Of a stretch of DNA of 64,000 nt, positions 5,701-56,749 are shown piece by piece. The notes below the pieces were generated by a model that saw only the letters and a program-made list of their open reading frames with translations, was not told the DNA's origin and searched no databases. The stretch's first letter is position 1. Every line of letters begins with the position of its first letter. The position numbers and the translations under genes are program-made. Location: NCBI GenBank assembly GCA_035084275.1, contig CM068756.1:14694001-14758000 (forward strand), read 5' to 3'. This DNA comes from Hydrolagus colliei. Its lineage: Eukaryota.

Positions 5701-7305
5701 TGAAGTGCGAGAAGGTCATGGTCTTCTCCAAAATCCACAATATCCACCTGGCAGCCTCCTCCTGCCTCTCATCGCCCACCATCACCACCCACATTCCGTC
5801 CCCCTCACCTTCCCCATCATCAGCTTCTATCACTACTCCGTTCCTACAATCCAGTTTCCGCCCTACCCACAGTACAGAGACTGCGCTTGTGAAAGTCACA
5901 AGCAATGTTCCTCTCTATCTGTGACCAGGGCTCCCTCTGCCTCCTTGTCGTCCTGGACTCTTCAGCAACATTCGACACAGTCGACCACGCCATCCTCCTC
6001 CACCACCTCCTCCGTTGTTCACCTCAGTGTGACTGCACTCGCCTGGTTTGAGTCCTACCTTACAAACCACCGGGAGTATATCGCCACAAATGGCTTTTCC
6101 TCCCGCTCTCACTCGGTTAAATGTGGGGTAACCCAAGCATCCATTCTTGGACTCCTCCTCTTCCTAAACTATCCTCTTCCTTCTTGGTAACGTCATCTGC
6201 AGACATGGGGTACACTACCACATGTATGCGGATGACACCCAATTCTATTTTTCCACCTCACTTTGCGACCCCCTGATGTACTGTCAGCCTGCCTGTCAGC
6301 CATGAGGAGCTGCCTGTCAGACATGAGGAGCTGCCTGTCAGACATGAGGAGCTGCCTGTCAGACATGAGGAGCTGCCTGTCAGCCATGAGGAGCTGCCTG
6401 TCAGACATGAGGAGCTGCCTGTCAGCCATGAGGAGCTGCCTGTCAGCCATGAGGAGCTGCCTGTCAGACATGAGGAGCTGGATGAGCGTGAGTTTCCTGC
6501 ACCTGCATGTTGACAAGACGGAAGACATACTATTTGGCTCTCTTCGTCGTCTTCATTTACATCGCTCTCACCTCCTCCACCTACATGACCTGCCCCTAAA
6601 ACTCTCCGAACCGGTACGCAACCTTGGCGTGAGGTTCAACCCACAAATGTCCTTCCTCCCCCACATCCGGTCTCTCACCAGCACTGCTTTTTTCCACCTC
6701 CGACATTTTGCCCATCTTTGGTAATAACTTGCCCCAAAAGCCGCTGAAACTCTGGTCCATGCCTTTGTCACCTCTCAGCTGGACTCTGCAAATCCACTCC
6801 TCCACCACAATCCATAAAATCCAGCTCAGTCAGAACTCTGACGCCCGCGTTCTCACCCGGACCAAACTTCGCTCCCCCATTACCACAGTCCTTGCCAGAT
6901 TCACTGGCTCCCTGTCCCGGAGAGGATCCATTTTAAGATCCTCAATCTTGGCTTCAAATCTCTCCAATCCTCTGCATCCCTTACCTCTCTGACCTCTTCT
7001 CTCCCCAAAACAGCACCCGTTGCCTTCGCTCCTCCGGTTCAGGTCTCCTCCTCGTCACGCAAATCCTCCGTTCCACAATCGGCGGCCGTGCCTCCAGCCA
7101 CTGCGCCCCGCAGCTGTGGCACTCCCTTCCTCACTCCCTTTGCCTTGCTCCCTCTCTTCCTAGTTTCAGGTCTCTGTTAAAGACCTTTCTGTTCGACGGC
7201 GCATTGGGTCACCTTGCTCCCCTTCCCCCTTTTGTGAAGTGCTCTGAGACGCCATCCAGCTTGGAGGGCGCTATATAAACCAAAGTTGTTGTTGTTGTTG
7301 TTGTA
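2727..7305 (+). mobile_element. Composite, decayed long L2 LINE (endonuclease + RT + 3' tail)
   Basis: APE motifs LQNVRSVCNK, MALTETW, IILGDFNLH (3560-4000); a second APE fragment restarts near 4720; RT HMYADDTQ near 6220; (GTT)n tail at 7285-7303; many frameshifts. Confidence 0.85.
6290..6478 (+). repeat. 9 x 21-bp tandem repeat, in frame (CLS[D/A]MRS)x9, inside L2 RT
   Basis: Unit tgcctgtcag(a/c)catgaggagc counted from the sequence and ORF 6263-6724. Confidence 0.95.
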
Positions 7306-8300: not shown

Positions 8301-8352
8301 ATGGCAAGCACTGCGTTTCACTATTTCTCTCTCGTGGGGTTGCTTTCCACAG
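8301..8352 (+). CDS. Gene A exon 1, signal peptide (MASTAFHYFSLVGLLST)
   Basis: ATG in gccATGg context, hydrophobic leader, phase-1 donor G|GTAGGT; paralogous exon at 28816. Confidence 0.8.
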
Positions 8353-8579
8353 GTAGGTGCTCGGTTTGGTTAAAAAAAAACCTATGTATTTTTGTCCTAA
8401 AGTACGCGCTCCGGGCGCTACCCTGAGAGAGAGATTCGCTAGATAAATGCAAAAATGTTGTGAACGTAGTTTCGTTGCTTCACATTCAACTCCCCGACCT
8501 CACGCTGCGTATTTTCTCTGTACTCGTTTTGATCGGTTATGTATTTTACCCAATCAGTGTCTGAATTTATTCCTGATAG

Positions 8580-8897
8580 TTGCTGACGGTACTTTGATGA
8601 AAGTGACTCAACTCCCCAAACACACTGCAACTAAAGGAGGAAGCGTCACATTCCAGTGTGGCATTCCCTACTTTGATAGCAGCCCACGTATTAAAGTGTA
8701 CTGGTGGAAGTTTGGGGAGAGGGAGTACCTGCAAACAAAGCCAGATCCCAGGAAAATATTTGGTTTCGAACAAGGAGGAAGCGGCTTCTTTCAGCTCCTG
8801 GATGTGAATTTCCAGGACTCTGGAGTTTATCACTGCGCTCTGGTGTTACAGGGGAAAATAGCAGCAAATGGAACTGGATCCACTTTAACTGTTTGCC
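8580..8897 (+). CDS. Gene A exon 2, IgV domain with J-like G strand (SIRP-like receptor)
   Basis: FQC...VYWW...DSGVYHC...NGTGSTLTV; acceptor gatag|, donor C|GTAAGT; 318 nt, phase 1-1. Confidence 0.9.
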
Positions 8898-10074
8898 GTA
8901 AGTGTTAAACCATCGTAGATCTGGACCATTGCTATCTACACATGTTATGCAAACATAACTAACTATTACATTGTACTCTGAAAAGAATCAAAAGTAGAAT
9001 AAAACCTACATGTGTGTTTATCTTCCACTTTGGGGAAATGTTCCAGTTCCTGAAGAGGAATGGCATTCCCTGGTTACCCAATCCTGGAGAGTATAGGTTG
9101 GCAAGTGCCAAGGGCTGGGACCTGAGTTAGCTAAAGCCGCAAACTTGTCCCAGCAATTAAACACTTGAAAACACTGTGTCCAGCAAGCTTCCTGCCGCGT
9201 GTGTGGGGCAGTCAGCCTGCCGCTTACTGACTCGTCCTTGCTAAAGTAAATAGGGGACATGAGTGGGAAGACTCTCTGCCCCCAGCACTGTCTGCCTCTG
9301 ATCCTCGCTGATGAGCCGGGCTGGCTGGTCTGTCACCAGCAACGCTTGAGAGGCTCTGAAGACCTGCCAACGTTAGGAATGGAAACACTGACACAGAGTT
9401 GACTGAGTTGGAACATTGCGCCGCTGAGCGCGTCCCCGTAGAGCAGTTCAGTTCCAAGGAGACTCCATTCACCTCGATAGGGTAATCATTTAATAGCTAC
9501 AAACACGATAAACATGCCAGTAACCAAATTAACCCAAACCAAATAATAATAATGAATTTTAAAATAATAATAATTCGTATCATTAGGAATATACACTGAG
9601 ATTTATTCGCATCGAACTGTCCGAATAACACAATCGAGAATTGCATAACATCTCTAGAATATCCTTGTAAAGGTGGGAAACACGAAATTTATCATGGATA
9701 CTTTTAAGAAGATTGTGATAGTTTTTTTTTGCATTGATATCAGCCACTCGGCTGACTGAAAACATTGTGGAAATGAATCCTTACCTCGTTGACGGTTTAA
9801 ATAGAAAATAGCAGCCGCGTTTTATTCTCGCTTGGGCTATCTTTTTTGTGTGAAGTCATTTACTTACAGGTGAACTAGATTCAATAATATCAATGTTGTT
9901 TCATTACTTTGGGAAACTGTGATTCCTGGAGATTAAATAAATGCTATTACTGAATATGCCGTTAAGTAAGAAATACATAAATCAGATCAATTTGCGGCAG
10001 AAAATTTAATCGGATATAAATCAGAATAAACGTTTCTCCAACTGAAGTTGTGTAATTCGGTTCCAATATGGAGG

Positions 10075-10375
10075 TTTATATCGCGGTGCCTCGAGCCTCA
10101 CAAGCGAGAGACCTGTGCTCCATTCCAGGAGCACAGGTCTCTCGCTTCTCACTCCGATGTGAGGAGTGAGGAACCTTGGGCAAGGTTCCTCACTCCTCAC
10201 ATCGGATTATAATCCCAGAAGAGGATCCACAACAATACATTGATCATAAATTGTCTGTGCGCAATTGGCCGCCGCGTTTCTGCCACAAACGTAAAAGTAC
10301 ATTCTGTGAGGCGCTTGGAGACGTACAGAAGATGTGAAAAGCACTATGTGAAATGCAAGCATTATTATTGTTATT
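10075..10375 (+). mobile_element. Deu-type SINE with rearranged double-hairpin head, abutting the C1 acceptor
   Basis: Core tgtgcgcaattggccgccgcgtttc and tail aaatgcaagcattattatt; head contains two perfect stems. Confidence 0.75.
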
Positions 10376-10388
10376 ATCTAATTTACAG

Positions 10389-10700
10389 TTCCACCAACGT
10401 CGCTGAAGATAATCCCAAGATTCAGACAACATAATACACCCGTATCTCTGACTCTTGTGTGTCAAACGGCTGTGTATTACCCGAAGAATCTCACGCTGAC
10501 TTGGTATAACAATGGCACCGAAATTACAACCGGAATAAATACCACTGAGCAGCAGCATCCAGATGGATTGTATAGAACTTCCAGCTCACTGGAGGTGGCA
10601 CCACCTGTCTTGAATGGGACTGTTTATACCTGTACTGTATCACACATCAGCCTCCAGGCTTCAGAAACCGCCAATTACACAGTTCAGCTTTCCGGAGAAA
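10389..10700 (+). CDS. Gene A exon 3, C1-set Ig domain
   Basis: LVCQTAVYYPKNLTLTWY...DGLYRTSSSL...YTCTVSHISL is a C1-set signature; 312 nt, same length as the gene C C1 exon. Confidence 0.9.
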
Positions 10701-11044
10701 GTAACGTGCCATACATCTTATTATCAATCCGCAGTAAATGTTCGCATGATTATTGCAATTGATCGTAAAGCTAATTTATAATTATTTAAAAAGAAAATCC
10801 ACTTCTGATTCAATGTATTAGAAATGTAGGTACTAATATGTGTGAGTTATTTCCCCCCCCAAATCATACAAGAAAACGCATTACTAACATAAAATTAGAA
10901 ATTCACTAACATAATCTTTATTCTGGTACAACCTGGAGTTAATTAAACTATAAGTTAGTTATCAGGCCACAAACATATTGTGTTGAGAAAAGAAATAAAT
11001 TACACACTATAACCTATCGTTTCTTTATTTATCTTACCATTTAG

Positions 11045-11146
11045 AAGGAAATAATTATTGGATCGCTGGATGTGCAGGGGGTGCACTGATATTTCTAATA
11101 GCTTTAATTATCATTGGAAAGCGATGCCAATTAATGAAACGGAGAG
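11045..11146 (+). CDS. Gene A exon 4, transmembrane, uncharged (WIAGCAGGALIFLIALIIIG-KRCQLMKRR)
   Basis: Hydrophobic run followed by basic residues; AG/GT sites keep frame; 102 nt like the gene D TM exon. Confidence 0.85.
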
Positions 11147-11409
11147 GTGAGAAACATCTGTTTTTTATTGAAATTAAATTATATTACTCGTATTTTAATT
11201 GAATGTTTCAGTGTGTAAACGAGACATCCACGGGTGATGCAGTGGGAAACGGGTTGGAAGACTAAATATCTGTGTAGCTCCTTAATGATTCTTAAATATT
11301 AAGGATGTTCAGAATTTTTATTCATTCCAGTCCGCATGCTATTTTAAATTCCTATTGTAGAAATGTAATACCTGTACATATTTCATTAATTTAATCTCAT
11401 TAATTTTAG

Positions 11410-11453
11410 ACTCCCATAAAAAAACGAATGGATCGCACAGTTCTGGAGAACAG
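11410..11453 (+). CDS. Gene A exon 5, short cytoplasmic exon (DSHKKTNGSHSSGEQ)
   Basis: 44 nt, phase 1-0, homologous to 54282-54325. Confidence 0.8.
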
Positions 11454-11529
11454 GTAACTTTATATAATTTATCTCAGCAGGTTTATCATCTTGCAAGCTG
11501 ATATTGAACGAAAACACAGAGATTGTTCT

Positions 11530-11780
11530 TTATAATTATAATTCTTGCATTTGATCAGAATACACTGTGAAGTGAATTGACGGTATAATTGTCGGTGAAA
11601 TGCAGCAGCCAATTGCAGACAGCAGTGTCCCACAAGCCGTCGTGGATTGAAATGACCAATTTTTTTCGTGATTATTATCAGACAGGTGGAAACTTGCCCA
11701 AGGTTTCGCCCTGCCTGTAATTGAACCCAGGTCTCCCGTTTGCACGTCAAATGCTTTAATCACAGAGCTAGAGGAGTCCA
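11530..11780 (-). mobile_element. Deu-type SINE copy (gene A intron)
   Basis: Same core/head as 430-755. Confidence 0.7.
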
Positions 11781-12264
11781 CAATACTGCTTAAGCACTGA
11801 GTGTCACACTGCGATGAACAAGTGATGTTCAGATGCCTAGTTTAAAATATTTCGAAAAGCATTTGAAAATATTTTACAATACTTATATTTCATCATATAC
11901 ACTGATAACCAATTCAATTGGTTCAATTCCTGGCACAGCAAAATTTGGGGCAAGTTTCCATATGCCGATGTCTCTGTTTACCTAGCAGTCCGTAGGATCA
12001 GTTAGCCGAATGGCGGATCGCTTTGCTCGGGATATTAATCCTTTAAAAACAATAATAAATTGGTCACTCAATCTATGATTGCTTGTAGGAAACTGCCCCA
12101 TTTTCCCACAAATATACAGTCAATTAATTCACAGTATATTCTGTGAAGTGCTTTGAGACATCTGGAAATTTGAAACGCGCAATATCAAATGCAAGGAATT
12201 TTATTATTGTGTTGAGAACAAAAGACAATGAATGAATCATGGAACTACAAGTTGTATTTTACAG

Positions 12265-12348
12265 GGAGCTGACAGTATCACATTGTATTTGACATGTTCC
12301 CAGCAATCTCAAAGACCTAAATATCAGGAAAGGACAGCACACACCCAG
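12265..12348 (+). CDS. Gene A exon 6, degenerate tyrosine-module exon (GADSITLYLTC...TAHTQ)
   Basis: ttttacag| acceptor, CAG|GTGAGA donor, 84 nt phase 0-0, open frame. Confidence 0.6.
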
Positions 12349-12858
12349 GTGAGAAATAATGAATTTAGACATGATACCTTTCAATCCCTAATCTATATTG
12401 GATTAGAAAATAGAAGGAAAATCAAGTTGTTTACCATATTATTATTTATGTACTTCACCCTCTACAAATTGTTTCATTCCTTGGTAGAGTTACACAGATC
12501 CTTCATAACTTATTAAAATAATCATTCTTAATGTGAATCTTGGACTGTGAGTACGCCAAATTATTCAAATGTATGAACATTCTAGATGAATGATGTTTGT
12601 CCTCAAAAGCACAGTTTTGGAATTTTAGCAATTGCCTACAAACTGAATTTTCTCTTCTACTTGCCTTGTGAGAATTTATACAAGCTGCTATTAACCGTAT
12701 TTGTATATGAAAATGAATGTTTAACTCATAGTTTATTTTGCAACCAACCAAGACATACAGAACGCAGTGGTGGAAATTCTGATAGCATTTATTTGGGAGA
12801 TTTCTGAAGTAAGGCAACATAGTTTAATTAATTACATTTACAAACATTTACTTTCCAG

Positions 12859-12966
12859 CCAAAGGGAGCAAACAGGAACAAGCCAACATATGCATTGATG
12901 GATTTCTCTGGCTCCAAGAAAACAGGAAAGGCTAAACCTACCAACAAGAATACAGAATACGGCGAG
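12859..12966 (+). CDS. Gene A exon 7, cytoplasmic with PTYALM and TEYGE|V motifs
   Basis: ctttccag| acceptor, GAG|GTAAGG donor, 108 nt phase 0-0. Confidence 0.8.
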
Positions 12967-13089
12967 GTAAGGGTAATAAACCTCATGAAGCTAATAGTCA
13001 AGAAATGTTACAATACTAGGTATCAAAGCTGATTATTGGTTCATCTTGAGCATACTCCCTTCCATATAGATTAGGTGTCACTTATGGGT

Positions 13090-16000
13090 ATGTCAGTTAT
13101 GTTGGAGTCTCGGACCACTTTCTCTTCTCCTTCTCCTCTCGCATCCCTCTCTCCTCCACCAAGCTCTCAACTGTACTTTTCCGCCCATGGAAAAGTCTCC
13201 CCACTGAGTCCCTCACAGAGGCCCTCACATCCTTTGACTTCCTCTGGCCTTCCACCCACAATGATCATGAAGCAGCCATCCAGCTGCTTCATGATCACCT
13301 CTCCTCCACCTTCAACTCTCTAATCCCCCTGAAATCCAGGTCTATCTCCAAACTTACCCGCTCCCCCTGGTACAACATTCATCTCCACTCCCTAGAAACC
13401 CAAACCCGGCTGCTCGAGCGCAGGTGGCAGAAAACTGGGCTGACAGTTCACCACCAACTGCTTCAGGATCATTGTGGGTGGAAGGCCAGAGGAAGTCAGA
13501 GGATTTGAGGGCCTCTGTGAGGATCTCAGGAGGGAGACTTTTCCATGGGTGGAAAAGTGGCTTGAGCATCTCCACAGTTACCACCGTTCTTTATCTCGCA
13601 CAAAAATGGCCTACTACTCGAATATCATCCTAGAGGCAAAAAGTAACACAAAAGTCATTTTTTCCACCACCCACCACCTCCTCTGTGCACCCCCTCAGAT
13701 ATCCTCAATCTTCACTTCAAATGCGAAGTGCAAGGAGGTCATGACTTCTTCTCCTCCAAAATCCAAAACATCTGCCAGGCAGCCTCATCCTGCTGCCTCT
13801 TGTCAACCACAACCACCACCCCCATTCCATCCCACTCACCCTCCCCATCATCAGCTCCTAACACAACCCCATTCCTACATTCCTTCTCCCCCGTCTCTCC
13901 TTCCTCCCTCTCACTTAACATCACCTCTATGAAGCCCACCACCTGCTGCCTCGACTCCCTTCCCACCAACTTCCTGCTCACCCAGCTCCCCCTCCTCTGC
14001 CGCTGACATCATCAACTAGTCCCTTTCCACAGGATCAGTTCCTGCCTCCCTCAAAACTGCTGCCATCACCCTACTCCTCAATAAACCTCCCTTAGATCCC
14101 TGAAACCCCAGCCACTACTGCCCTATTTCAAACCTGTCCTTCTGTGAAGATGTAATTTTTTACTCGTTCCCAGAACCGTTGTCTTACAAACAGACCATAC
14201 ACCGTGGATAAGAAAATGTAAAGTTTATTTGCTATACCAAGAGCTGATTCTCAAAAGTCAACAGTCTCCAAGTAGAGTACCTGACAGTCAAAAGAATGAG
14301 CTGCCGGTGGTCGGTTAATGCAGCCTTTTTATACCCAAAAAGACAGGGGTTTGCAGTACACACAAAGACAGTTACAGAAGTATTACCAATCACAGGGTTC
14401 CAACAACTATTCGAATGGTGACATCACTCAATCCATGTCTCTCTAACAAAGTGAAATGTTAAAAACAAGCTTATCTCCAGATAGTGTCTAGTTTAGACAA
14501 TGTCAAGGTTTGCTGGAGTTACTGTTTTCTGCCCCGTGAAATACTCAGATAAGGATGCGAGTGGCATTGTGCCAATCTGCATTTCCCAGGACCTGTCTTT
14601 TTCATTTTGTTAGTGGGCCAAAAGCACAGAAATTACATCTAGGCATAAAATGGCTAATTTCATATTTTGTTAGTGGGTTAAAAGTATAGAAGTTACATCT
14701 AGGTATAAATGGCTAAATTTTACAATTTCACATTCCCTCCTTTTATCATATCCCATATGATAACAACAATTATTCATTTTTAATAATTATTTCATTTATC
14801 CCTTGCATTTCATTTTCCTCTTCCCAATATTTCCTGTCCTTTCTTACTTTTCGTTCTGCTAACTCTCTTTTTATTGTTTACTAGACCTTCTTTGAATACC
14901 AAGATACTGAGAGTTCTTTTAGTTCATTTATCACAATATTAGTTCTAATTAAATCATGAATTTGCATGCAGCATTCAATTCCAATAACCTTACACACTCC
15001 ACCATAACTAACTCAGCCAGTTGATCACTTGGACATTGTCCAGAAGCGATGTCAAAACCAGACTATCTAAAGGCCAGAGCTGTAGCCTCCCTTCTTTTCC
15101 CAGACCTTGAGATGGCTCTCCTGCTACTCACTTGGCAATTTCCCAAATGAGTACAATCCTTTGTGTCTTTGTTAATTGTTTCTCTCCCTTGTGCTCAAGG
15201 TTGCTGACTGTGCCTGTGTTGTGGATAGATTGTTTCAATTGGTGCCCGATTGGAACTAACTATAATTTTTAGTACAGTACCTCCATATCCCAACAGACCC
15301 CATCTTGAGAGTGAGAAAATACAATTTTCGATCTCTCACAACCAAACTACGCCTGTATTAATTTAGCAAGTTGTAAATTCCTTTTGTATCATTCTTGCGC
15401 AGCCCTCGGTGTAAATAGCATGTAAGCAGAAAAGTATGAAACCATAAGACATTGTAAAATCACAAAAACATAAGACATGAGAAGTACAGTTCAGAGCAAG
15501 ACATGTGTAGTACAGTTCAGTACAATTAATTAAGCAGATTGATACAGTGGCTGTGATTAGGAATCAACTTTAAAAAAAAAACGTAGTACAGTTTGTGTTG
15601 ATTGTAGAATATCTCCTTTTTTTTTCAAGATCGGTTAGACTTGTCTTCTTTGTTCTCAAACTCAGACGTTTTTGGTCACGCATCCAAATCTGTAGTGAGA
15701 AATTCAACAGCTCGTTTTGACCATTCACTGGTAAAATGTCCTCGAAAGTCCATAGAGTCAGTTTTGTTTCAGCAAACAAGTCCATGAGCCTTTATAATTT
15801 TCTTTTTTGGTCAATGTAAGACAAGACCAGAATGTCCAGTTCCCACCTCGAGTGGGTCAAACTGATTACCATCATCATTATCAAAATCTTCACAATTCCC
15901 TTTTACCTCAGCCACCACATCAATCGTTGCAACTTATTTTAGCATCTGTAACTACAGCACATCATTATCAATGATATCATTATTAACATAAACAGTACAG

Positions 16001-19000
16001 CCACAAAAATTATGAATAGCATTATTGAAATACTGGAATAAACAAACTAAATGGTTCAGAAGGGAGTGGATTTTTCCTTTTTGGACATGTCATCCCTCCC
16101 TGCGGGTTGTTCTGTAAACACGTGAGACATTTCTTACAAAAAAAAATTTTTTTGTATAAGAAGAGAATCCAAAGGTTGTATATCTGCTGTTTACCATAGA
16201 TACCATCCCTCCTTTTGAGACATGACATTTACCATGGCTCAATTCAGCCGCTATGGGAAACAATGCTTTTGGTAATACTGGTAATTCATCCGGCCCTATC
16301 CACAACCCCTCAGCTGTTTTGGTGCATTTATAGTTTTCCCATATGCGTATCTCTGGTGATTTTGCTTCACCTTGCATTTCTCGTAATAGGGTGTGGTCTA
16401 TTTCAGGTGTCTCTTGGATTTGTAAAATTACAGTATACTGACATTCTGAATACTATCAGTTCTCGAACTTCAATTGTCTTTATTCTACCTATCGACCCTG
16501 TCACCTCACACTCTACAACACCCAATGCATACAAAACACATACGGTTGCTAATGTACACGATTGACTGGGTTGCACTTGTCCACTCATCTCCCCCTGAGA
16601 TCGTCGAGTGAAATCAGCTTTGTGGGTGGGAGAGTTGGAGCGAAAAGTATAAGTTATCCCAGAAGAAGTGGCTGCATGGAATGCCATTCTTGTCAGTATC
16701 TGTAAGAACTAAATTACAAGGTGAAATCTCCCGTTTCTTTAAACATTTTCAGTTGTTAACATGACATTATCATTAACTGCAGAAACACTTTCATTCTATG
16801 TGGAAACCAAAGAGTTACGTAAATTCATTTTGTCCACTTAAACCAGAGTGCCTGCAGTCAGTGAATTTAAACTGCTCACAGTCAATGGCTGCAGTTAATT
16901 CTAACTGCCGCAAGTTAACTGCCACAAGCTAATTTATCCATATTTAATTTCTACAAACATTTTAAGTAAATGCTGGAATACACAAAATAAATGATACATA
17001 AAATAAATCAGGCTTTTTTAAAAAAAAATCTTATATCTTCAAAGTTTACTCTACTTTATCGCTTCGTTCTTGCGCCAAATATTCCAAATTATTGGTTGTA
17101 TTTTTACTGTGCTATTACTCAGTACATATGGAACGTGGGTAGTATCTGGCTTATACTCTGCGTCTAGAGAAAAGTCAGACCTATCACGGTCCGGTACTTT
17201 TAAAATAATCCAAAATCTATGGAACATGGATGACATCTGGCCATACTCTGCGTCCAGAGCAAAGTCAGACCCACCATTGTCCTCTTTAAATGCATACATT
17301 ACATAAAACATACAACAAAAGCTTTTCTTCAATTTGCTTTCTTTTTTTTATTTTAATTAATTATTTTAATTGATTTTAATTACAAGCTAAACCATATACA
17401 GGTACAAACTTTTTTTTACACTTCTTTTACACAATAAAAAGGTAACACATTGAGCTCAAGTTTTCTTAAGGACCGTACAGTCACAACTTCCTGTGGGGAG
17501 AAACTTTCAATTAGGAGTATTGTGACTGTTCGGATTGCTCTTTTTAAAGAATAGTTAGGGAGGCACAAGTCTATCAATAATATGCAGAGTGGCCTCAAAC
17601 TCATGTTGTGACTTTTGGCCTTCCCCAAATACTCATTCAAAGGGTCGCATACCCCATAGAGATCGTAAATTCAGATAGCAATTGCTTAAAAAAAAATGTT
17701 TTTCACCTGACATTTTGTCATCACACTTTCTTTTTAATCAGAACAAATGGTGTTATTGGAACATCAAATCCAAATTGTTTTCATTTCAATTTTATGTGTT
17801 TTTACTTATTAAAAAAAAACGGATTCTCAGTCAGGTTAATTAAAAAAATATGCCTGACTTGTTTGAATTTTCGAATGTAAGTCTCTACATTTAAATTTTT
17901 TTTATCAATATACATTTGGTTTTCGACTGTCTGGTCTTTGACTTTCAATTATCTGTTGTAGCATAACATAGTTAAACATATAAAACAATTGTATTAAATA
18001 CGGTAAATATAAAATTGTTATCAATACTTATACTCTAAAATCTTATACTTTACTTTCATGTGTAGTACTTCACAAATTCTTATACTTTAAATCTTATTCT
18101 TTACAACCTTAAACTTTAATGTTCTTATTCTACTTTTAATTAAAAAAACATGTATTTCTTTTATCACCGGCTACCAACTTATTTAACCACAAAATTGACA
18201 TTTTTGCTTCTATGCTTATATAGAAATTCTTAACCTCTAAAACTTATACTGAAACACCTTATTCTTTATCTTTAATCTTATTCTTTATTTCCAAATCTTA
18301 TATTCTAAAATTTCCAATACTTATACCGTATCTTACTTAATGGCCGGCCTCTAAATAACTTATATTGTAAATATGTACATGCAGCGCACTATCGTGACGT
18401 TGTTTAGGAGTGCGACTCCCCTGTGGTTTATTAGTTCATTTTTTTTAGTCCTTTTCCACAACCTCGCTTTTTCCATAATTGTCTGTTAGCTTGCCTAGAT
18501 AGTAAACTAAGTTTTGTCTCATATTCAGGGAATAATGTGCACATGATTTGGACCGGATCCTTATAACACCCGATACAACACCCGATACAACAAGTAACAA
18601 GTCAAAAAAAATTTAAGAAAATTGCTTATGCTAGAAGAACGTCATTCATTATTCAAACAAATTAAATCATTCAAAACTACAAGCACCATTACTAAACAAC
18701 ATGAGCTACTAACGGTTCAAACCTACAACACCCCTATGAAGACATAGTGGGCAGTTTGGCGATGAGCTCCATGCGTAAGGGGTTAGTTTGTCTAGCGATT
18801 AACAAATTTCCTTGTGTTTCCGTGCTACATCCGTTCAAAACTACCAGCAGGTTAGTTTGTGTTACGGTGAGCATTGTACGTACTCCACGTTATGTATGAA
18901 CCCCAACTGGCGGCTCCAATGAGCTCGCTCCAAACATCGGTGAGTTCCAATTACACCTTGTATAATGAGCTCCAGTAACAACAATATGAGCTCCAACCCC

Positions 19001-20615
19001 ACAAAGGGTTCCATTATACCTACACAATTGTTTTTGTTAAAACACAAATTTAGATTTTTTTTAACGTCTTCCACTATATTTTCATCTCCAATGGATGTAT
19101 CTTAACGGTTCTTTTATTGGGTCTCGTCAACAGTTACTTAGGTTCAATAGTCGTGGGTCACATTTGTTGAAAAAAACACCAATGAGAAACCAAGGTTTTA
19201 CAGATATTTTATCTCACCTTGTTGGCCTGTTTCTCGGATGCTGCTCCCAACAACTGTTCGACCTCTTATTCGACTACCCGTTCCTTGATGTAACGTTTTG
19301 AGACCCTGCTCGCAGCGCCAAATGTGAAGTTGTAATTTTTTACTCGTTCCCAGAACCGTTGTCTTACAAACAGACCATACACCGTGGATAAGAAAATGTA
19401 AAGTTTATTTGCTATACCAAGAGCTGATTCTCAAAAGTCAACAGTCTCCAAGTAGAGTACCTGACAGTCAAAAGAATGAGCTGCCGGTGGTCGGTTAATG
19501 CAGCCTTTTTATACCCAAAAAGACAGGGGTTTGCAGTACACACAAAGACAGTTACAGAAGTATTACCAATCACAGGGTTCCAACAACTATTCGAATGGTG
19601 ACATCACTCAATCCATGTCTCTCTAACAAAGTGAAATGTTAAAAACAAGCTTATCTCCAGATAGTGTCTAGTTTAGACAATGTCAAGGTTTGCTGGAGTT
19701 ACTGTTTTCTGCCCCGTGAAATACTCAGATAAGGATGCGAGTGGCATTGTGCCAATCTGCATTTCCCAGGACCTGTCTTTTTCATTTTGTTAGTGGGCCA
19801 AAAGCACAGAAATTACATCTAGGCATAAAATGGCTAATTTCATATTTTGTTAGTGGGTTAAAAGTATAGAAGTTACATCTAGGTATAAATGGCTAAATTT
19901 TACAATTTCACACTTCCTTGCCAAAGCATTCAAACATATTGTTGCCAACCAACATCGCACACATCTCTCCTCCCACTCCCTTTTTGAAACCCTCCAGTCT
20001 GGTTTCCACCCTGCCTACAGTACAGAGACTGCGCTTGTGAAAGTCACAAACGATGTCCTCTCTATCTGTGATCAGGATTCCCTCTGCCTCCTTATCCACC
20101 TGGACCTGTCCACTGTGTTTGACACAGTCGACCAAGGCATCCTCCTCCACCGCCTGTCCTCCATCACCCACCTCAATGGGACCTCACTCACCTGGTTCAA
20201 GTCCTACCTCACAAACTGCCAGCAGTACATCTCCACAAAAGGGTTTTGCTCCCGCTCTCACCCGATTATCTGCGGGGTACCCCAAGGATTCATCCTTAGC
20301 CCCCCTCTCTTCCTCATCGATATGCTCTCTCTTGGGGATGTCATCCGCCGACACTTCCACATGTACGCGGATGACACCCATCCGCGTACTATTTCTCCAC
20401 CTCACTTTGTGACCCCCAGTCCCCTGATGTTCTGTCAGCCTGCCTGTCAGACATCAGGAGCAGGATGAGCATGAACTTCCTACACCTGAATGTTGACAAG
20501 ACGGAAGCCACACTCTTTGGCTCTCGTCAATGTCTCCATTCGCACGGCTCTCAACTCCTCCACCTTCCCAAACTGCTGTTAAAACTCTCTGAATCTGTGC
20601 GCAACCTAGGCATCA
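13090..20615 (+). mobile_element. L2 fragment split by the ERV (13090-14142 and 19913-20615)
   Basis: Joining across the ERV restores the RT motif PISNLSF|LAKAFKHIVANQ; HMYADDT near 20360. Confidence 0.85.
14143..19912 (-). mobile_element. Endogenous retrovirus, internally deleted, young
   Basis: Two 590-bp TG...CA LTRs (14143-14732, 19323-19912), 4-bp TSD CTTC, PBS at 19303-19320 (tRNA-Ser-like), PPT at 14733-14747, integrase HHCC remnant near 16100-16300, env CX6CC (GGVCKVIGIECC) near 14954-15004. Confidence 0.92.
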
Positions 20616-20806
20616 GGGTGGTAGAAAGTGACTTAGAGGGCCTTGATCTTTTAAAAATATATATATATATATTTTTTTTTTATCACATTTTTCATAAAAA
20701 ACTTGCATATAACTAGAGCGAAGTCTACTAATGCAAACTTATAAATAGTATAAATAGTTGGCAGAGTCGCATAAAGTAACAGTATTCTGAAACTTTGTCT
20801 TTACAG

Positions 20807-20935
20807 GTCAAACAAGGGGTAAACAAGCTGACTTACGCTGCTCTGGATTTGGGCAGCTCAACAAAAATGGGAAAGCCTAAATCTAACAAGAATACACAAT
20901 ATGCTGAGCTACATATCAAAACTACAAACGCGTAG
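20807..20935 (+). CDS. Gene A terminal exon, ITIM LTYAAL and TQYAEL, stop
   Basis: ctttacag| acceptor, 43 codons ending TAG; clear paralog of exon 7; total CDS 1149 nt = 383 codons. Confidence 0.8.
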   Translation, partial: VKQGVNKLTYAALDLGSSTKMGKPKSNKNTQYAELHIKTTNA

Positions 20936-28815: not shown

Positions 28816-29371
28816 ATGTCAAGTGTCATGTTCTACTATTTCTCTCTCATGGGGTTGCTTTCCACAGGTAGGTTTAATTTTTTTAAAATAGTTTATATTT
28901 ATAAGTGCTACCCTGAGAGAGAAGCGCTATGTAAATGAAACACGTTGTAAACAGTTTCATTGATGCGCTTTACCTCATGCTTTATATTTTCTCTGTACTC
29001 ATTTTCAAAGGCTATATATATTACTCAATGTTTGAATTTATTTCTGATAGTTGCTAAATGTGCTGTGGTGAAAGTGACTCAACTTCCCAAACACACAACT
29101 ACAACCAAAGGTGAAAGTGTGACTTTCTACTGTGCCATTGCCCATTTAGAAGGCAATTTACGTATAAAAGTGTACTGATGGAAGCTTGGGGAGAGGGAGT
29201 ACCTGCAAACAAGGCCAGATCCCAGGAAACAGTTTGGTTTTGAACAAGGAGGAAGCGGCTTCTTTCAGCTCCTGGATGTGAATGTTCAGGACTCTGGAGA
29301 TTATCATTGCGCTCTGGTGTTACAGGGGGAAATAGCAGCAAATGGAACTGGATCTACTTTAGCTGTTGATG
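28816..29371 (+). pseudogene. Gene B, SIRP-like pseudogene (leader 28816-28867, V exon 29051-29371)
   Basis: Paralog of gene A exons 1-2; the first Trp of the C-strand YWW motif is TGA at 29176-29178; no C1/TM exons follow because homology to the gene A intron stops at the hAT near 30090. Confidence 0.88.
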
Positions 29372-30092
29372 GTAAGTGTTAAACCAGCGCAGATCTGGAT
29401 CGTTGCTATCTTATCATATTAGGCGAGCATATCTAACTAATACACTGTACTCTGAAGGGAATCAAAATTAGGCTGAGAACGACATGAGTGCACATCATTT
29501 AATTTGGGCAATTTTCTAGTAGCTAACCCTAACCTGCTTCTGAAGAATATAGTCTGGCAAGTACCAATGTTTGGGTCCCGCTGGAATTTAATCAGCTAAA
29601 GTCACATACTTGTCCAGCAACTTGAAATAACTGTCTGACAAGATTCCCGCTGTTTATTTTGGGTCGACAAGCCCGGCGTTACTCATTTGTATTGCAAGGT
29701 TAAACAGGAGCTGAATGGGAAGAATCTCTGCCCCCATAACTGTCTGCCTCTAATCCCTGCCAATGAACCTGGCTGGCGGGTCTGTCACCAGCAAGGTCCG
29801 GGATTTCTCAGGACCCGTCAATGTTTGGAATCGAAATACTGACACAGAGGATTGACTGAGTTGCAACATTGCGTTGCTATGCTCATGGAGCCAGTTCAGC
29901 TCCAAGGAGACTCGGATAACCCCAATAGGAGAATCATCTAGGAGCTATAAACACGATAAACGTGCAAGTAACCAATTCAATGCAAGTCAATATTTGTTAG
30001 GTGTGTACTGGAAATAATTCGAATAGAACTGTCCTAGTAGCACAATTCAGGGTTGTTTAACATCTCTAGAATATCCATGTGTAGGTGGGATC

Positions 30093-33013: not shown

Positions 33014-33175
33014 GTGTGTATTCTTTTTTTAATCTAATTTGACAAAAATGGACATAGATTATATCATTTTATATAATTTTCTATTGATAGAGCAAGTCTG
33101 TATCTTGCTCTGTGCATTACTTTGTCTTTTGCTGTAATTCTCTTTCTAATTTATGTTTGAATTTATTTCTGATAG

Positions 33176-33496
33176 TTGTTGACGGTACAATGATCAGAGT
33201 GACCCAAATCCCAGATCATATGGAGGCAATTAGAGGCACTAACGTTACCTTCCACTGCATGTTTCCTGACGCTCAATCCAACTCACGTGTAAAAGTTTAC
33301 TGGTTGAAAGAGGGAGAGAATAGCTACCTGCATACAAGGGAGGATAAAAGACAACTGTTTGAGTTTGAAAGTGAACAAAAAAGCTTCTTTAAACTCCAAA
33401 ATGTGAATCTCCAGGACTCTGGTGTGTATCATTGTGTTCTCGTGCTTCAGGGGAAAATAGCGGCCAGTGGACCTGGATCACGTCTGGATGTATGGG
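33176..33496 (+). CDS. Gene C exon 2, IgV domain
   Basis: FHC...VYWLK...DSGVYHC...SGPGSRLDVW; gatag| acceptor, G|GTAGGT donor. Confidence 0.9.
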
Positions 33497-35003: not shown

Positions 35004-36475
35004 GTAGGATGCCCACAATCTTACTGTCAATTAATTTTTTCATGGTTTTTTTTAGTATCTGATTATATTTCCTGCGTGTTTACGAGTTGAAGCAAATCCC
35101 ATATTTTCTTTCTATTGTATTGGTGAGTTCGGATTTGACTGCTCATTTTCACTGATATCGGAATGAGATCTAGAGATCACTCCGTGGATGCACCCAGCCG
35201 TCCGTTTATAGTAATGATAATAATAATCATCTGTGTCCTTGGCTTTGATATAACACTTGGTAATGTTATTGATGCATCTCAAAATGCTTCACATAATGTA
35301 TATGAAATTGTATTGATTGTGTATATTGACATTAATTTCACCTAAATTGAACATTGCGACCCATGCTCATAGTTTTCCGGTAGAAAGATAGTACGAGAAG
35401 TCAGCTACAATTACAATTTTCACAGATATGCATATAAACTATACATTGCACTCTTTATGCAGAGTAGTCCATGGGACATACCACAGTTGGGGGCTTGGAA
35501 GCTGGGGCTTGATCATAGCTTCTGTCAAAGAGGGAAATGTTAAAGTGGTATTAAAATTAATTAAGAAGGGGGCCAGGCAGAGGGATTAAGGCAGGGATTT
35601 CCAAAGATTAGGACGGGAAATTCGACCAAGGATTACAGTTGTTGGACTTCCCCAGGCTTGCTCGTGACATCTGAGTAATGGGGACGACAGAGGAATGAGG
35701 TTAGAGAGGTTGGGGGCTGTTCGAGTATGAACATGAGACTGAGGGACCTGAAATCTATTCCTTTGAAGCCATGAAGGGAGTCCACGGTCATCAGCGTGCT
35801 GATTTTAACTATGTGAGGACACCAGTGATCCAGATTTGGATGAATTGGACCTTGTAAATGGTGGAACTGGGTGAGCCAGTAAGGAGTCTGTTTGCACTCA
35901 ATGGTGAGATGCAAAAGATGTGAAAAAGTTTATTAGTGGCATCTGGTGTAAGTCAAATACTAGTCGTCTTTCTCTCTTCCAAATAATTAACATTCAGCAA
36001 GCTTCCCTACTCCCCACACCTCTGTTTACCTAGCAATAGTTATTATTCGATTGGTGGTTTGCTTTTCCTGAAGTAATAAAGCCTTGAAAAAAAATCATAT
36101 GTTATTCACTCAATGCACGATTGTTTGTGGGACACTGCTGTGCTCAACTGGCTGTTGCCGGTTGCTCCCAAAATATACAGTCAATTCACTTTATGGTGCA
36201 TTCTGTGAAGCCTTGGAGATGTCTCAAAATATGATAACAACAAAATTAGATTTTGCTCCCACCTTGCTCATTGGGAGAACGTCCAGGTGCAAGTGCAAGG
36301 ATGACATTGACAATTATTATTATTATTAATAAAAACCTACCTGATATTTAATCTCCATTAGAGTTCAGTGATGTTTGCCTTGGCATGTCGTGACTTGTGT
36401 CACCCCCCAGTCTAAACCAATTTCTGTTGAACCCTACCCTGCACACTGGCTCATGGTTCTGTCTTTACTTCATAG

Positions 36476-36591
36476 TTTCTAACAGAGAACGCAATATTAT
36501 AATTTTCCGGTATGTATGCAGTGCGTTGGTAATACTTCTCTTGACTATCATCGTTGTGGACCATTTCAGAATTCATCCCATTCAAAGGTAA
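36476..36591 (+). CDS. Gene C exon 4, TM with Arg and short tail (NIIIFRYVCSALVILLLTIIVVDH...IQR*)
   Basis: ttcatag| acceptor in phase 1; hydrophobic run containing R; total CDS 810 nt = 270 codons. Confidence 0.75.
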
Positions 36592-48378: not shown

Positions 48379-48528
48379 GTATGTGCTCCTTCTATACCAC
48401 AATTTGTCAAAAAGTAAGATAAATGACATAATTTGATATTATTTATTGATAGAATAAGTCTCTTCGCATTGCTTTGTCTCGCGTACTAAATTCTGTTTCT
48501 AATTAGCATTTGAATTTATTTCTGATAG

Positions 48529-48846
48529 TTGTTGATGGTACAATGACCAGAGTGACCCAACTCCCCGACCATGTGGAGGCAATTAGAGGCACGAACGTTA
48601 CCTTTCAGTGCATGTTTCCTGACACTCAATCCAACCTGCGTACAAAAGTGTATTGGTGGAAGCAGGAAGACAATGTATACCATACGAAGCCGGATAAAAG
48701 AAAACTGTTTGGGTTTGACAGCAAACAAAGCAGTTTCTTTAAGCTCCTAAATGTGAGTCACCAGGATTCTGGTGTGTATCAGTGTGCCCTCATGATTGAG
48801 GGAAAATTAGTGGCCAGTGGACCTGGATCACAGCTGATTGTATGGG
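48529..48846 (+). CDS. Gene D exon 2, IgV domain (intact)
   Basis: FQC...VYWWK...DSGVYQC...SGPGSQLIVW; close paralog of the gene C V exon. Confidence 0.9.
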
Positions 48847-50695
48847 GTAGGTATGGAATATTCCAAATTAGATATAGTGCCAAAAATTGTAGAAAAGGAT
48901 AAAAGATGTTGAATTATTTTAAGAATATGAAATGGGTGTTTCAAAATGTTGTCCTTTAAAATGTATCCTCCTGGGGGGAGGTGGGATCTGCTTGGAACTG
49001 AACTAGCTCCCGGGTAACATGCTTGCAATAGAATGTCAGAAACAGGTCAACCCTGTGGGATAGCTGTGGGATTCTCTGGTTCCTGAACCAAGGCACTTCT
49101 GAGGACAGCCCAGCCAGCCTGACTGATCAGCAGGACTTGGAGAGGCAGAGGAGTCTCTAGGGGCAGGGATTGTTCTCACTCAGCTTCCGTTAACCCTGCA
49201 GGTCAAACCCATAATTCTTCTACTTGTCCACAATGGACAAACAGGGGAAAAGCTTGTGAGATAGAGCTCTCGTTGACAAGATAAGGGGTTTTAGCTGTTT
49301 AGATTCCAACAATACCCAACAAACACTCAGGGATTCCCAAGCTTTGGTTTTGCTAGCAATTGCATAATACTCTGTGGAATTACAAAATGCGGGATGGGTC
49401 AGTTTGGAAAGTCAGTGCACATTTCATTCCAATACATGGGAATTTCCACATGTGGGTGGATACATGGTTTGGTTTTGGATACTCTTCTACTGCGCGTATT
49501 AGACCACTGGTTAATCAAAACGTCTCTTTAAAAAAGAACTTTACTAAATAACTGAATGTTGTATATCTCCATATGTTTGAGAAGCACATGCTAGAGTGTT
49601 GGGCAGGAATGTCGGGGAGCTTTGCATTTCCAGAAGTGCCTTTATTTGGATACGATCAATATCCAGTCTGCAGGATGGGATTGATGTTAGAAAAATGACA
49701 CTGTTCGGAGAGACGAGTTTCTTGGTGTGCTGAAGAACATATCAATTCTATCTGTCTCCAGATAAAATTGCTCATTCAAAACACTTGTGATGTGCATTTG
49801 AGGCATTTCAAAATCACAATCAAATACAGTATAAGGATTTTAGAAAAAATTAATTAAGATTTAGACAATTTCAAGCCCATATTTTTATTCAAATCAAATT
49901 CAGTCATCAGTTAGATATACTTAGTTGAATACAATATCAGTAATTAACTATTTCTTCATCTTACTGATGAGGAAAACAATAGCGCAATAGCGCATATCAG
50001 CATTGGCTACTTTGCCGTTATCACATATATTGCTTCAAAATGTATTATCTTCTCTGGATTTTAAATCTGGAACTGTAAAACAATCAAGTTTTTCTTATTA
50101 CTCCAGTTCCATTTATGGAATAGTTTGAAAAGATAAATTTGTATTAATGGGGAGAGGCAATCGGAATTATGGAAAATAATATTTTATTTAGTGAAAATTG
50201 AGACATTCACTGACATTTTGTGCTGGCTTTTCATTGTATATTTATTTGCTTTTGGGGGAACTGTAGTGACAAAGTATCTTTCCCATAACAACTTTTATAG
50301 TTGTCGTGAATGGCGAACAAATCAAAGTTAGAACAAAATATTTAAAAATACTAATCCCTGCATTTGGCTTTTCACATCTTCTAGACATCTTAATCCACTT
50401 CACGGAATATGCTATAAAGTGAATTGACCTCATATCTGTGGACAAAACACGGCAGCCAATTGTGCACAGCAATGTCCCGCAAACAGTCATAGAATGAAAA
50501 AGATTTTGTCCAGCTTGGAATTGTTTAAATACAAAGCAAATGAATCAGAATCAAAATGCTGTATTGAACGGAATAAAATGAAAATCATAATAAAGTTTAA
50601 TCTCCACCAGTTGATTGTACGTTTTTGTAATTCTTCTGTACTGTTTGATGTGAAAGGCGCTATACAAATGTAATTTTGTTGTTGTTGTTCTATAG

Positions 50696-50996
50696 TTCCT
50701 CCAACTCCACTGAAGATCTTCTCCAAAGTTACAAAAATAGTTTCGCCTCTGGCTCTTGTGTGTGAAACCAATGCATTTTATCCAGAGGATCTTAACCTCA
50801 CTTGGTATAAAATGGCACCAAAATTACATCTGGAATAAACATCACTAAACAGCAGAATGCAGAGGGATTGTATGAAGCTTCAAGCTTTGTGGAAGAGAAC
50901 AAGACTGTCCAAAGTGAGGTTGTTTATATCTGTCAGGTTTCTCACATCAGCCTTCAGATTCCAGAAATTGTCAACTACACAGTTCAGTTCTCCAAC
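50696..50996 (+). pseudogene. Gene D decayed C1 exon
   Basis: Versus gene C: 1-bp deletion in the A run at 50809-50812 giving TAA at 50836-50838; donor segment gacacaggtaggatgcc deleted near 50994; about 40-bp L2-type tail inserted in the acceptor (50648-50690). Confidence 0.85.
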
Positions 50997-52669: not shown

Positions 52670-52771
52670 GAAATAATACTGATAAATTAATACAGGTATC
52701 TGGATGTGCAGGATTGACATTTCTTGTGCTTTTAGTCATTGGAATATCATGTCGATTTATGAAACGGAATG
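52670..52771 (+). CDS. Gene D TM exon, uncharged core (SGCAGLTFLVLLVIGISC-RFMKRN)
   Basis: 102 nt phase 1-1, homologous to the gene A TM exon. Confidence 0.85.
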
Positions 52772-52968
52772 GTAAGACATATTAAGGTTTTAATCAGACT
52801 TAAATTTTATTTTTACTTTAATCTAATACTTCAAAGAGTAGATTAACAGGTACCTGGTTGGCATGGCCATTGAAGTGATTTGAAGGATAAAGAATAAACC
52901 AATGCAATTTATTTTACTGCAATTTACATCGCATTTACATCGATGAGGAGAAATTTTTTATTACATCG

Positions 52969-54281: not shown

Positions 54282-54325
54282 GATCACACAGGAAGCTGAA
54301 TGGATGTGACATTCGTACAGATCAG
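54282..54325 (+). CDS. Gene D short cytoplasmic exon (GSHRKLNGCDIRTDQ)
   Basis: 44 nt phase 1-0, homolog of 11410-11453. Confidence 0.8.
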
Positions 54326-55023
54326 GTAAAGTACAGATTTAATTCAAGAAGATGTTTCTGTGTTATGATTGAATAAGATCCTTGGTGCTATAATGACGTC
54401 CGAATATTTTGAACAGGGACTGGATATTCTTACCATTGTTAACATCGAATGCTGCATTTATTCTTTTCTATTTCTTACAATTCTTGTCCCCTTCACTGTG
54501 TCATTCATATATTCCCCCTAAGCTATCGATATGCTTAATACATGGCTCAATGTGCAATACAACACTGTTGCATAAATCTGCATAAAACGATGCAAGTGAT
54601 ATGTTAATACTGTATTTGAAATATAGCTGCTGATGTTTATTTCTATTTCAATAGCCTGAGATTTGTACATTAAACAAATATGGGACTGTATTATATGATG
54701 TTTAATGCACAGACATGAGCAGTGTGTTTAAAATGGGCCTGAAAATATTAGCTGTACTTTGAGGTACAGTAAACTACAGGTCCAAGACTCTTCCTCGACT
54801 CCTTTCAGGCCCAACTGAATGCGAGGTTTGGTGAGAGATGAATGCATACCTGTATCTGGGTCTCCAATACAGATTCATTGCATTTAGCCGGTCTCCCCGC
54901 AGATTATATAACAAGCCAAGTTTCAAGTTCCAAATTAATATTTAGATACTGCATTGCTTAACCAACAGTGGAGCCCAGTGAAGACCAGGAACCAACCAAG
55001 TAACCTCACCTTGTGTTTTACAG

Positions 55024-55648: not shown

Positions 55649-55852
55649 ACCAAACAAGTAGCAGCCGGTAACATGTTGACATATACAAATTTGAACTTGT
55701 CTGGCTCCAACACAAAGGAAAAGAGAAATCCTGAATGCAGTGATAGTAAAACAGAGTATGCCCAGGTACACGTGAGAAAACACGCAGCAGCACAACAGAC
55801 CACATACAAGGAACCAACCGTAGCAGAATGCTACAACATAGGTGGAAGCTGA
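55649..55852 (+). CDS. Gene D terminal exon with ITIM LTYTNL and ITSM TEYAQV
   Basis: ctttacag| acceptor, open to TGA; motif order resembles the SIRP-alpha ITYADLNL...TEYASI pair; a possible internal donor at 55766. Confidence 0.8.
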   Translation, partial: TKQVAAGNMLTYTNLNLSGSNTKEKRNPECSDSKTEYAQVHVRKHAAAQQTTYKEPTVAECYNIGGS

Positions 55853-56749
55853 TTGCTGCATGTTGGTACCATTCTGTGATACAGATCATATCAGACCTGC
55901 TTTGTCAATCTAGCATATTTCAAACATAACTGTACATATTTGCGACTTTACCTTTTCTTCCCATCCTTACGTGGCCCCCATCCCCCAGAGGAGTTCCAGA
56001 TACTCATCTTCAATTTTAAATCGCTACACCATCTTACCCCCCTATCCCCACCACCTCTGCAACCTTCTTTAACAATAATAATCTGACCTTCCATCAGATC
56101 AGCAAGTACTGACATGCTTTATGCTCCCTGTGGCACGATCGGCAGTGGGGCTTTCAGCCTGTCTGCTTCCGCTCTCTGGAACGCCAACCAGAAGTCCATT
56201 TACCTTGTACCTTCCCTCAACTCATTCAAGACTTTGGTCAGTTTCAGTTGCTTAACCTCACACTTTCATCGGCCCCTTCTCCTCCCAAACCTTGGGACAG
56301 CTGCAAATCCTCGATAGTTCATTACCTTGGGATAATATCCCTCTGACTTGAAATATTCTACATAAATGCAACTTGTTGTTGCTGTATTTTTATAAAAGAA
56401 GTGTAAGAATATATTACTGGTTAGGCCCTATTATGCTACTTCATTGTAGGGAACGGCGATATGGGATTTTTCCGGATATGGATATATCGGTTTGCTCATA
56501 CCTGCTTAAATCGATCTATCGAGTTTTTATACTGCGCATGCGCGTGCATTCGAAGTGCGCGTGCATTGATGGCGCGCGCGCATTTATGGTGCGCGCTCAG
56601 TCGCGGTGCGCGCGCATTGACGGTGCGTCCGCACTGACGATGCGCGCGCAGTCGCGGTGCACGCACATTTCGAAATGCGTGCTCTAGGTCCAGAAAGTTT
56701 GTAATGTTGGTGTCAAGGTCTGTTGAATTATACGATGTTGTTTGCTCCC

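Follow-up and report, generated by a model that had tools for sequence, protein, structure and literature searches.

The stretch of the Hydrolagus colliei genome analysed here (64,000 nucleotides; GCA_035084275.1, contig CM068756.1, positions 14,694,001 to 14,758,000 of the forward strand; hereafter the window) contains four related immunoglobulin-superfamily genes, A–D, on its + strand. Gene A (8301-20935, +) probably encodes an inhibitory cartilaginous-fish receptor with a V(J) domain, a C1 domain and a transmembrane (TM) segment, whose cytoplasmic tail arose from a tandem-duplicated phase-0 docking exon. Each copy of the ancestral module would represent one two-tyrosine docking unit, in which an xxYAxLDL sequence resembling an immunoreceptor tyrosine-based inhibitory motif (ITIM) is followed, after 22-25 residues, by T-x-Y-x-x. 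In an internal module the 5' splice site would fall just after Y+2, with the first codon of the next exon supplying Y+3; in gene A that codon is GTC and would complete TEYGEV, an immunoreceptor tyrosine-based switch motif (ITSM).

Domain structure and tail modules of gene A

Gene A was rebuilt by hand from the sequence and then checked by script. The spliced model comprises eight exons, all on the + strand, which give 1149 nt and 382 codons with no internal stop, and its introns are GT-AG throughout (14 of 14 splice sites canonical). Exons 1–4 follow the usual phase-1 plan of immunoglobulin (Ig) genes, with signal, V-set, C1-set and TM exons in that order. Exon 1 (8301-8352) contains the start codon and the signal peptide MASTAFHYFSLVGLLST, ends in phase 1 and is 70% identical to the N-terminal start of the orthologous protein of Callorhinchus milii (P0025). 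Exon 2 (8580-8897; 69% identity to P0025 by tblastn) encodes a V-set Ig domain whose J-like motif, GTGSTLTV, is joined in the germline, and residues 27-122 match the Pfam families Ig_3, ig and V-set, as in the membrane-distal V-set domain of SIRP-type receptors. Exon 3 (10389-10700) encodes a single C1-set Ig domain (Pfam C1-set, E = 2.7e-16), and its PDB matches include antibody constant domains and SIRP-alpha (2wng). No second C1-set exon was found between the V and TM exons by tblastn with 55 family proteins. An identity as UrIg, raised by the second-best PDB match (9dmx), was rejected: that entry, "UrIg2 V-C1-C2-C3", has another architecture, and the UrIg paper contains no mention of ITIM, ITSM or SIRP. 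Exon 4 (11045-11146) encodes the TM segment YWIAGCAGGALIFLIALIIIG and the stop-transfer sequence KRCQLMKRR, and exon 5 (11410-11453, 44 nt) the juxtamembrane sequence DSHKKTNGSHSSGEQ, leading from phase 1 to phase 0.

The remainder of the tail is encoded by three module exons. Exon 6 (12265-12348, 84 nt, phase 0-0) is a degenerate first-type module, GADSITLYLTCSQQSQRPKYQERTAHTQ; exon 7 (12859-12966, 108 nt, phase 0-0) is a second-type module, PKGANRNKPTYALMDFSGSKKTGKAKPTNKNTEYGE; and exon 8 (20807-20935, 126 nt plus stop, phase 0 entry) is a terminal second-type module, VKQGVNKLTYAALDLGSSTKMGKPKSNKNTQYAELHIKTTNA, closed by the stop codon. The first tyrosine of exon 7 lies in PTYALM, which is not a canonical ITIM, and the exon also encodes the ITSM tyrosine together with its Y+1 and Y+2 residues. 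Exon 8 contributes LTYAAL, a canonical ITIM, and TQYAEL, which is ITSM-like. With LTYAAL in exon 8 and TEYGE/V at the exon 7/8 junction (a slash outside brackets marks an exon boundary), gene A falls within the functional class of ITIM/ITSM immunoglobulin-superfamily receptors, defined as type I Ig-domain proteins with at least one (I/V/L/S)xYxx(I/V/L), optionally accompanied by TxYxx(V/I), in the cytoplasmic tail.

Homology among the modules was scored by tblastn within the window and by Smith-Waterman alignment, with z-scores taken against 2000 shuffles. Exons 7 and 8 are closely related (tblastn E = 7e-7 in the window; z = 12.1), and the last exon of gene D aligns with both exon 8 (z = 8.6) and exon 7 (z = 4.9). 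The proposal of the initial annotation that the tail was assembled from duplicated phase-0 module exons was thus borne out by exon phases (0-0) and by homology (z 4.9-12.1), the formal inter-exon alignment being significant for exons 7, 8 and the last exon of gene D. Its further statement that exon 6 is the same module held in part: the relationship among exons 7, 8 and gene D is direct, whereas tblastn and Smith-Waterman comparisons of exon 6 with exon 7 (z = -0.3) and with exon 8 (z = 2.5) gave nothing significant, and the pattern xTYxxL is absent from exon 6. What exon 6 does match is the module that opens the tail in relatives, of the form xxYAxLDLxxSxKxPRPKHQEERTVYAQ (z = 7.3-11.2 in five of six; 2.3 in Heptranchias), and the first and second tail modules of intact relatives are homologous (z = 12). 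Because these orthologous first modules bridge exon 6 to the second module, exon 6 is counted as a module copy.

A maximum-likelihood tree of 22 modules split the first type, which ends ...ERTVYAQ, from the second type, which ends ...NKNTEYxE, with support of 100/97; both types occur in holocephalans and elasmobranchs. In the same tree each tail exon has its own single partner in the three-module tail of the C. milii orthologue, with support of 99/96 for exon 6, 97/91 for exon 7 and 93/92 for exon 8. The three-module tail is therefore older than the split of the H. colliei and C. milii lineages.

Compared with the orthologous C. milii exon, TVQGAHDEMAYVTLDLTSSQKSPRPKYQERTAYTQ, exon 6 lacks 21 nt at its 5' end and, with them, the tyrosine at the ITIM position. 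Its second motif tyrosine has been replaced by histidine through a change of codon TAC to CAC, as had been read correctly at the outset. The tyrosines that remain, in TLYLTC and PKYQER, derive from Asp or are shared non-motif positions and fit no SH2 consensus. Exon 6 is a spent module. Its end had been described as TAHTQ/V; the view of a degenerate copy stands, but normal splicing yields TAHTQP and the valine would appear only on read-through.

The splice-junction ITSM and exon usage

Exon 7 ends ...ACA GAA TAC GGC GAG/gtaagg, and the first codon of exon 8, GTC (Val), completes TEYGEV. The claim that this ITSM is completed across a splice junction was confirmed, with exact positions given for the donor, for the GTC that opens exon 8 and for the stop reached by read-through (13032), and the junction is shared by the C. 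milii orthologue (TEYAK/GTC). Another C. milii paralogue has TVYAK/ATC. The relatives fetched for comparison were C. milii LOC103185890 and three paralogues, together with loci from Heptranchias perlo and Heterodontus francisci. In most of them the internal module exon ends right after Y+2 and Y+3 comes from the next exon. The module that follows a first-type one usually begins TKQG..., so that Y+3 is Thr and the result, TVYAQT (TVYAQ/T), is not a canonical ITSM. In two further genes the donor lies two codons later and the Leu or Val is encoded in-exon (TEYAQLQ/gtgagt and IEYTAVQ/gtgaga). A hydrophobic Y+3 after second-type modules is thus maintained whichever exon codes for it, which argues that the ITSM would be functional. 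The junction-completed ITSM is genuine and conserved, yet a consequence of the donor position common to the family.

It had also been pointed out that splicing and read-through both restore the valine. This is true, with read-through of the exon 7 donor giving TEYGEVRVINLMKLIVKKCYNTRYQS and a stop at 13030-13032, but it is uninformative because every phase-0 donor starts with GT and GTN encodes Val; read-through likewise gives Val at exon 5 (SGEQ/V) and exon 6 (TAHTQ/V). Past VRVIN, the read-through peptide has no in-frame conservation between gene A and C. milii. An AATAAA hexamer at 12975-12980, 9 nt inside intron 7, could have pointed to a truncated isoform; this was rejected because the read-through stop lies downstream of the hexamer and C. 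milii has gtcatcaacc in its place.

One tentative conjecture is that internal modules descend from terminal modules, in which the ITSM Val codon GTA acted as a latent donor; with a copy present downstream its GT would have come into use, and selection on the opening codon of the following exon would have restored the valine. Terminal modules do contain donor-like sequences (...GAG GTA CAG in the third module, M3, of C. milii and ...CAG GTA CAC GTG AGA in gene D), the tblastn alignment of exon 8 with exon 7 extends three codons into intron 7 (ELHI versus EVRV), and the donor position is labile, as the two genes that keep Leu or Val in-exon demonstrate. However, the three-codon extension is within chance, the flanks of the module exons, both up- and downstream, retain no significant residual paralogy (z -0.9 to 1.8 in most pairs), and a latent donor is unnecessary to account for the data.

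Since all module exons are symmetric, their gain, loss or skipping keeps the reading frame, and tuning of module number through isoforms is possible in principle. That regulated alternative splicing, by skipping of exons 6 and 7 or by intron retention, actually sets the number or class of tyrosine motifs is unlikely, although related genes offer suggestive cases. Horn-shark XP_067905924 (isoform X3) equals isoform X1 minus exactly the 37-residue first module, which corresponds to a 111-nt phase-0 exon (L005, 21927-22037), and in another horn-shark gene isoform X2 exchanges the terminal module of X1 for a short alternative end. Skipping of exon 7 in C. milii would give TAYTQ/V from TAYTQ/T. A mammalian precedent exists in mouse Ly108-H1, which is without exons 7 and 8 and one ITSM (PMC3135348). 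Among C. milii Ensembl and RefSeq models, P0001 and P0045 read through the exon-5 or first-module donors, and the peptide predicted from read-through of the gene A exon 5 donor, VTLYNLSQQVYHLAS followed by a stop, matches the C-terminus of P0001. On the other hand, the horn-shark isoforms are computational annotations and none comes from the module exons of gene A or its orthologue. Moreover, the gene A donors of exons 6 and 7 are strong (CAG/gtgaga and GAG/gtaagg), the read-through peptides are not conserved in frame, and exon 6 is motif-free in H. colliei, where skipping it would be without effect. Splice tuning of the number of signalling tyrosines, as suggested in the initial annotation, is plausible by analogy, yet unproven for gene A.

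The receptor family, predicted signalling and constraint

The best protein matches of the window genes are all from cartilaginous fishes, the top one from C. milii at 71% identity, with family E-values of 1e-127 to 1e-17. Gene A and C. milii LOC103185890 align collinearly, with 72-78% of nucleotides identical in exons and introns alike, and the two are most likely orthologues; the RefSeq model of the C. milii locus includes three matching module exons, the last starting with GTC. The exon plan of V(J), one C1, TM, a phase-1-to-0 juxtamembrane exon and then phase-0 two-tyrosine module exons is identical in six loci (L001-L006) from four species, among them the C. milii paralogues, Heptranchias and Heterodontus, and gene A fits it. 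Across ~40 family members retrieved, the tail has between one and four modules, as the symmetry of the exons would explain, and one horn-shark protein carries a recent duplication of a module pair. These counts point to exon gain and loss as a recurrent event in the chondrichthyan V-C1 family.

When 1.84 billion representatives were searched with a tail profile, 30 proteins matched at E ≤ 1e-3, essentially only members of this family and no tetrapod SIRP. Ten of the matches were named, nine from C. milii, Heterodontus francisci, Heptranchias perlo and Mobula and one a hypothetical protein of a teleost (Channa striata); the others were judged by sequence only, and one of them (P0042) is a spurious bacterial protein. 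A word-indexed search with the orthologue tail (P0025 residues 266-392) gave no match, probably owing to a tail-less cluster representative and to the penalty on a short, low-complexity query. Automatic annotation names the family "SIRP-alpha-like" (NCBI), "tapasin-related-like" and similar, and no published description of a large chondrichthyan receptor family of this kind was found in the searchable literature.

The closest parallel is SIRP-alpha (SHPS-1/PTPNS1). Its ectodomain, like that of gene A, consists of an N-terminal V-set domain that includes a joined J-like motif and then C1-set structure, ahead of a single-pass TM, and its tail repeats tyrosine pairs, xTYAxLxL ... TEYAx[I/V], ~24 residues apart, which bind and activate SHP-2 and SHP-1 (PMC5589908, PMC12975943). 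The SIRP family also resembles the window cluster in that inhibitory members and activating members with charged TM segments lie side by side. The modules of gene A and its relatives, with 22-25 residues between the two tyrosines, match in motif and spacing the SIRP-alpha peptide DITYADLNLPKGKKPAPQAAEPNNHTEYASIQTS, which activates SHP-2 when doubly phosphorylated (PMC5589908); the z-scores are 4.5-4.9 for the window modules and 8-9.4 for those of intact relatives in shuffle comparisons. That gene A works like SIRP-alpha is a reasonable inference from this module match, the V-C1 ectodomain, the PDB match to 2wng and the NCBI naming. In contrast to SIRP, gene A has one C1-set domain instead of two and lies outside the SIRP family as defined on that basis (PMC12975943), the tail profile does not reach tetrapod SIRPs at the threshold used, and its family has a variable number of modules with one exon per module.

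Two other groups of receptors share features of the tail. In the SLAM family (Ly108/SLAMF6, 2B4) tyrosine motifs are spread, as in gene A, over short cytoplasmic exons, and Ly108 isoforms vary in motif number, Ly108-H1 being the mouse example given above (PMC3135348). SLAM receptors differ in their V-C2 ectodomain of the CD2/SLAM type, in having no sequence relationship to gene A, and in their motifs, which are single ITSMs that bind SAP or EAT-2, whereas those of gene A are ITIM and ITSM pairs. Receptors of the CEACAM1/PECAM-1 type have a tail with ITIM and ITSM, as does gene A, and SHP-1/2 are recruited in CEACAM1 and PECAM-1. Their ectodomains are unrelated to that of gene A and their tails have no module repeat. 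Long and short tail isoforms of this type arise by alternative exon use (PMC11646291, PMC5856374); unlike the symmetric cassettes of gene A, CEACAM1 uses a frame-shifting exon to make them.

By analogy with these receptors, ligand binding would lead Src-family kinases to phosphorylate the tail tyrosines of gene A, the tandem SH2 domains of SHP-1 or SHP-2 would then bind the doubly phosphorylated module, and signalling would be dampened. The effective motifs would be TEYGEV, LTYAAL and TQYAEL, with exon 6 spent. Both kinase and phosphatase partners are inferred from established ITIM/ITSM biology (PMC12975943), the phosphorylation, SHP recruitment and inhibition expected of gene A are predictions on the same footing, and binding of SAP by the tail would be pure conjecture. 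Gene A is an ITIM/ITSM receptor with a motif-per-exon tail, a principle already known from mammalian inhibitory receptors such as Ly108, and does not reveal a new signalling principle. What it adds is that a motif-per-exon, phase-symmetric inhibitory tail was already present in a receptor family common to chimaeras, sharks and rays, a design in which phosphatase-docking units can be gained or lost in evolution, and possibly through splicing, with the frame intact. For comparative immunology, the result is a curated gene model and a module classification for an automatically misnamed family.

Constraint on gene A was assessed by comparison with C. milii. The ratio of nonsynonymous to synonymous substitution rates (dN/dS) stands at 0.58 in the V exon; in the tail it is 0.81 (exon 6), 1.26 (exon 7) and 0.65 (exon 8), with small counts throughout. 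Eighteen residues of exon 8 around the ITIM, VKQGVNKLTYAALDLGSS, are identical in the two species, with two synonymous changes in 54 nt against ~12% local divergence. The picture suggested is one of motif cores under constraint within a fast-evolving tail.

Several observations weigh against an intact inhibitory receptor. PTYALM in exon 7 and TQYAEL in exon 8 deviate from the strict ITIM/ITSM consensus, and the high dN/dS of the tail exons (0.65-1.26) indicates that, outside the motif cores, the tail is largely under weak constraint. The similarity to the SIRP-alpha tail is short and motif-dominated and could be the product of convergence. In addition, the C1 exon of the C. milii orthologue (GCA_018977255.1, MU249845.1, L003 ~9977) needs a frameshift to match the older XP_007902823.1, the current RefSeq model, XP_007902823.2, being reduced to 201 aa with a start inside C1, and genes B and D look defective. 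Because of this frameshift, the defects of genes B and D and the spent exon 6, the gene A lineage may be under relaxed selection.

The stronger proposal, that gene A is a copy undergoing decay in a rapidly turning-over receptor cluster and its module pattern a fossil without a present signalling role, appears improbable. In its favour are the loss of both tyrosines from exon 6, the dN/dS values of the tail, the C. milii frameshift that shrank the RefSeq model, the in-frame stop of gene B, the 1-nt deletion in an A-run of the gene D C1 exon, and the thirteen-fold growth of intron 7 (12967-20806, +) by a young 7.2-kb transposon nest, which accounts for the excess of its 7.8 kb over the ~580 bp found in C. 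milii. Nevertheless, all 382 codons of gene A are open and every splice site is canonical, the ITIM block of exon 8 is perfectly conserved at the protein level, the Val codon of the ITSM is conserved across species, and the homopolymer frameshifts in the neighbours and in the other assembly may be sequencing errors. Finally, a family-wide code in which the choice of downstream exon sets both motif number and Y+3 (Thr for non-ITSM, Val or Ile for ITSM), a class change of the sort that exon 7 skipping would cause at TAYTQ in C. milii, would mean that splicing switches the quality of signalling in a paired-receptor family of early jawed vertebrates, and is very improbable.

Neighbouring genes and repeats in the window

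Gene B (28816-29424, +) consists of a signal exon and a V exon only, with an in-frame stop (KVY-stop-WKLGERE). Its identity to the gene A orthologue of C. milii is 75%; it has no downstream C1, TM or tail exons and is probably a pseudogene fragment left by a partial duplication.

Gene C (V 33124-33495, C1 34670-35074, TM 36475-36582; +) has V and C1 exons closely related to those of gene D and a very short tail. Its TM exon (...IIIFRYVCSALVILLLTIIVVDHF..., ...IIIFRYVCSALVILLLTIIVVDHFRIHPI) contains Arg and Asp and resembles that of C. milii P0011. These charged residues suggest that gene C is the activating member of a set of paired receptors, as found among SIRP-type receptors.

Gene D (V 48483-48875, C1 ~50695-50990, TM 52670-52772, juxtamembrane 54283-54326, last exon 55649-55852; +) has only one module, the terminal one (TKQVAAGNMLTYTNLNL...TEYAQVHV...), to which the juxtamembrane exon is joined in phase 0. 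At ~50800-50815 its C1 exon reads TATAAAATGGC, where relatives have TAT AAx AAT GGC; loss of 1 nt from the A-run moves the reading frame onto a TAA, and gene D is either a pseudogene or affected by a homopolymer sequencing error. Following the ITSM of its last exon, at 55766-55780, is the sequence GTA CAC GTG AGA AAA, with two donor-like sites, CAG/GTACAC and CAC/GTGAGA, that coincide with the two real donor positions of internal modules in relatives.

The window has ~34-54% G+C (2-kb windows) and is rich in debris of long interspersed nuclear elements (LINEs) and other transposons. Within intron 7 of gene A, a LINE fragment with an RVT_1 domain (~13050-14140 and 19905-20620) is split by a ~5.8-kb element whose ends are near-identical direct repeats of ~596 bp (14143-14738 and 19323-19918), 5180 bp apart, and which has no recognisable open reading frames (ORFs). 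The inserted element resembles a young non-autonomous insertion of the long-terminal-repeat type. Upstream of gene A, LINE-derived sequence includes a ~24-nt tandem repeat at 6236-6552 coding for SCLSDMR/SCLSAMR units. Beyond gene D, in the region 56499-58242 (- strand), a long low-complexity repeat rich in Gly, Glu, Arg and Lys contains an assembly gap (a run of N at 56847-57037), and an adjacent ORF at 57038-58242 (- strand) with a BED zinc finger (E = 1.7e-4) is probably a domesticated or decaying hAT-type transposase.

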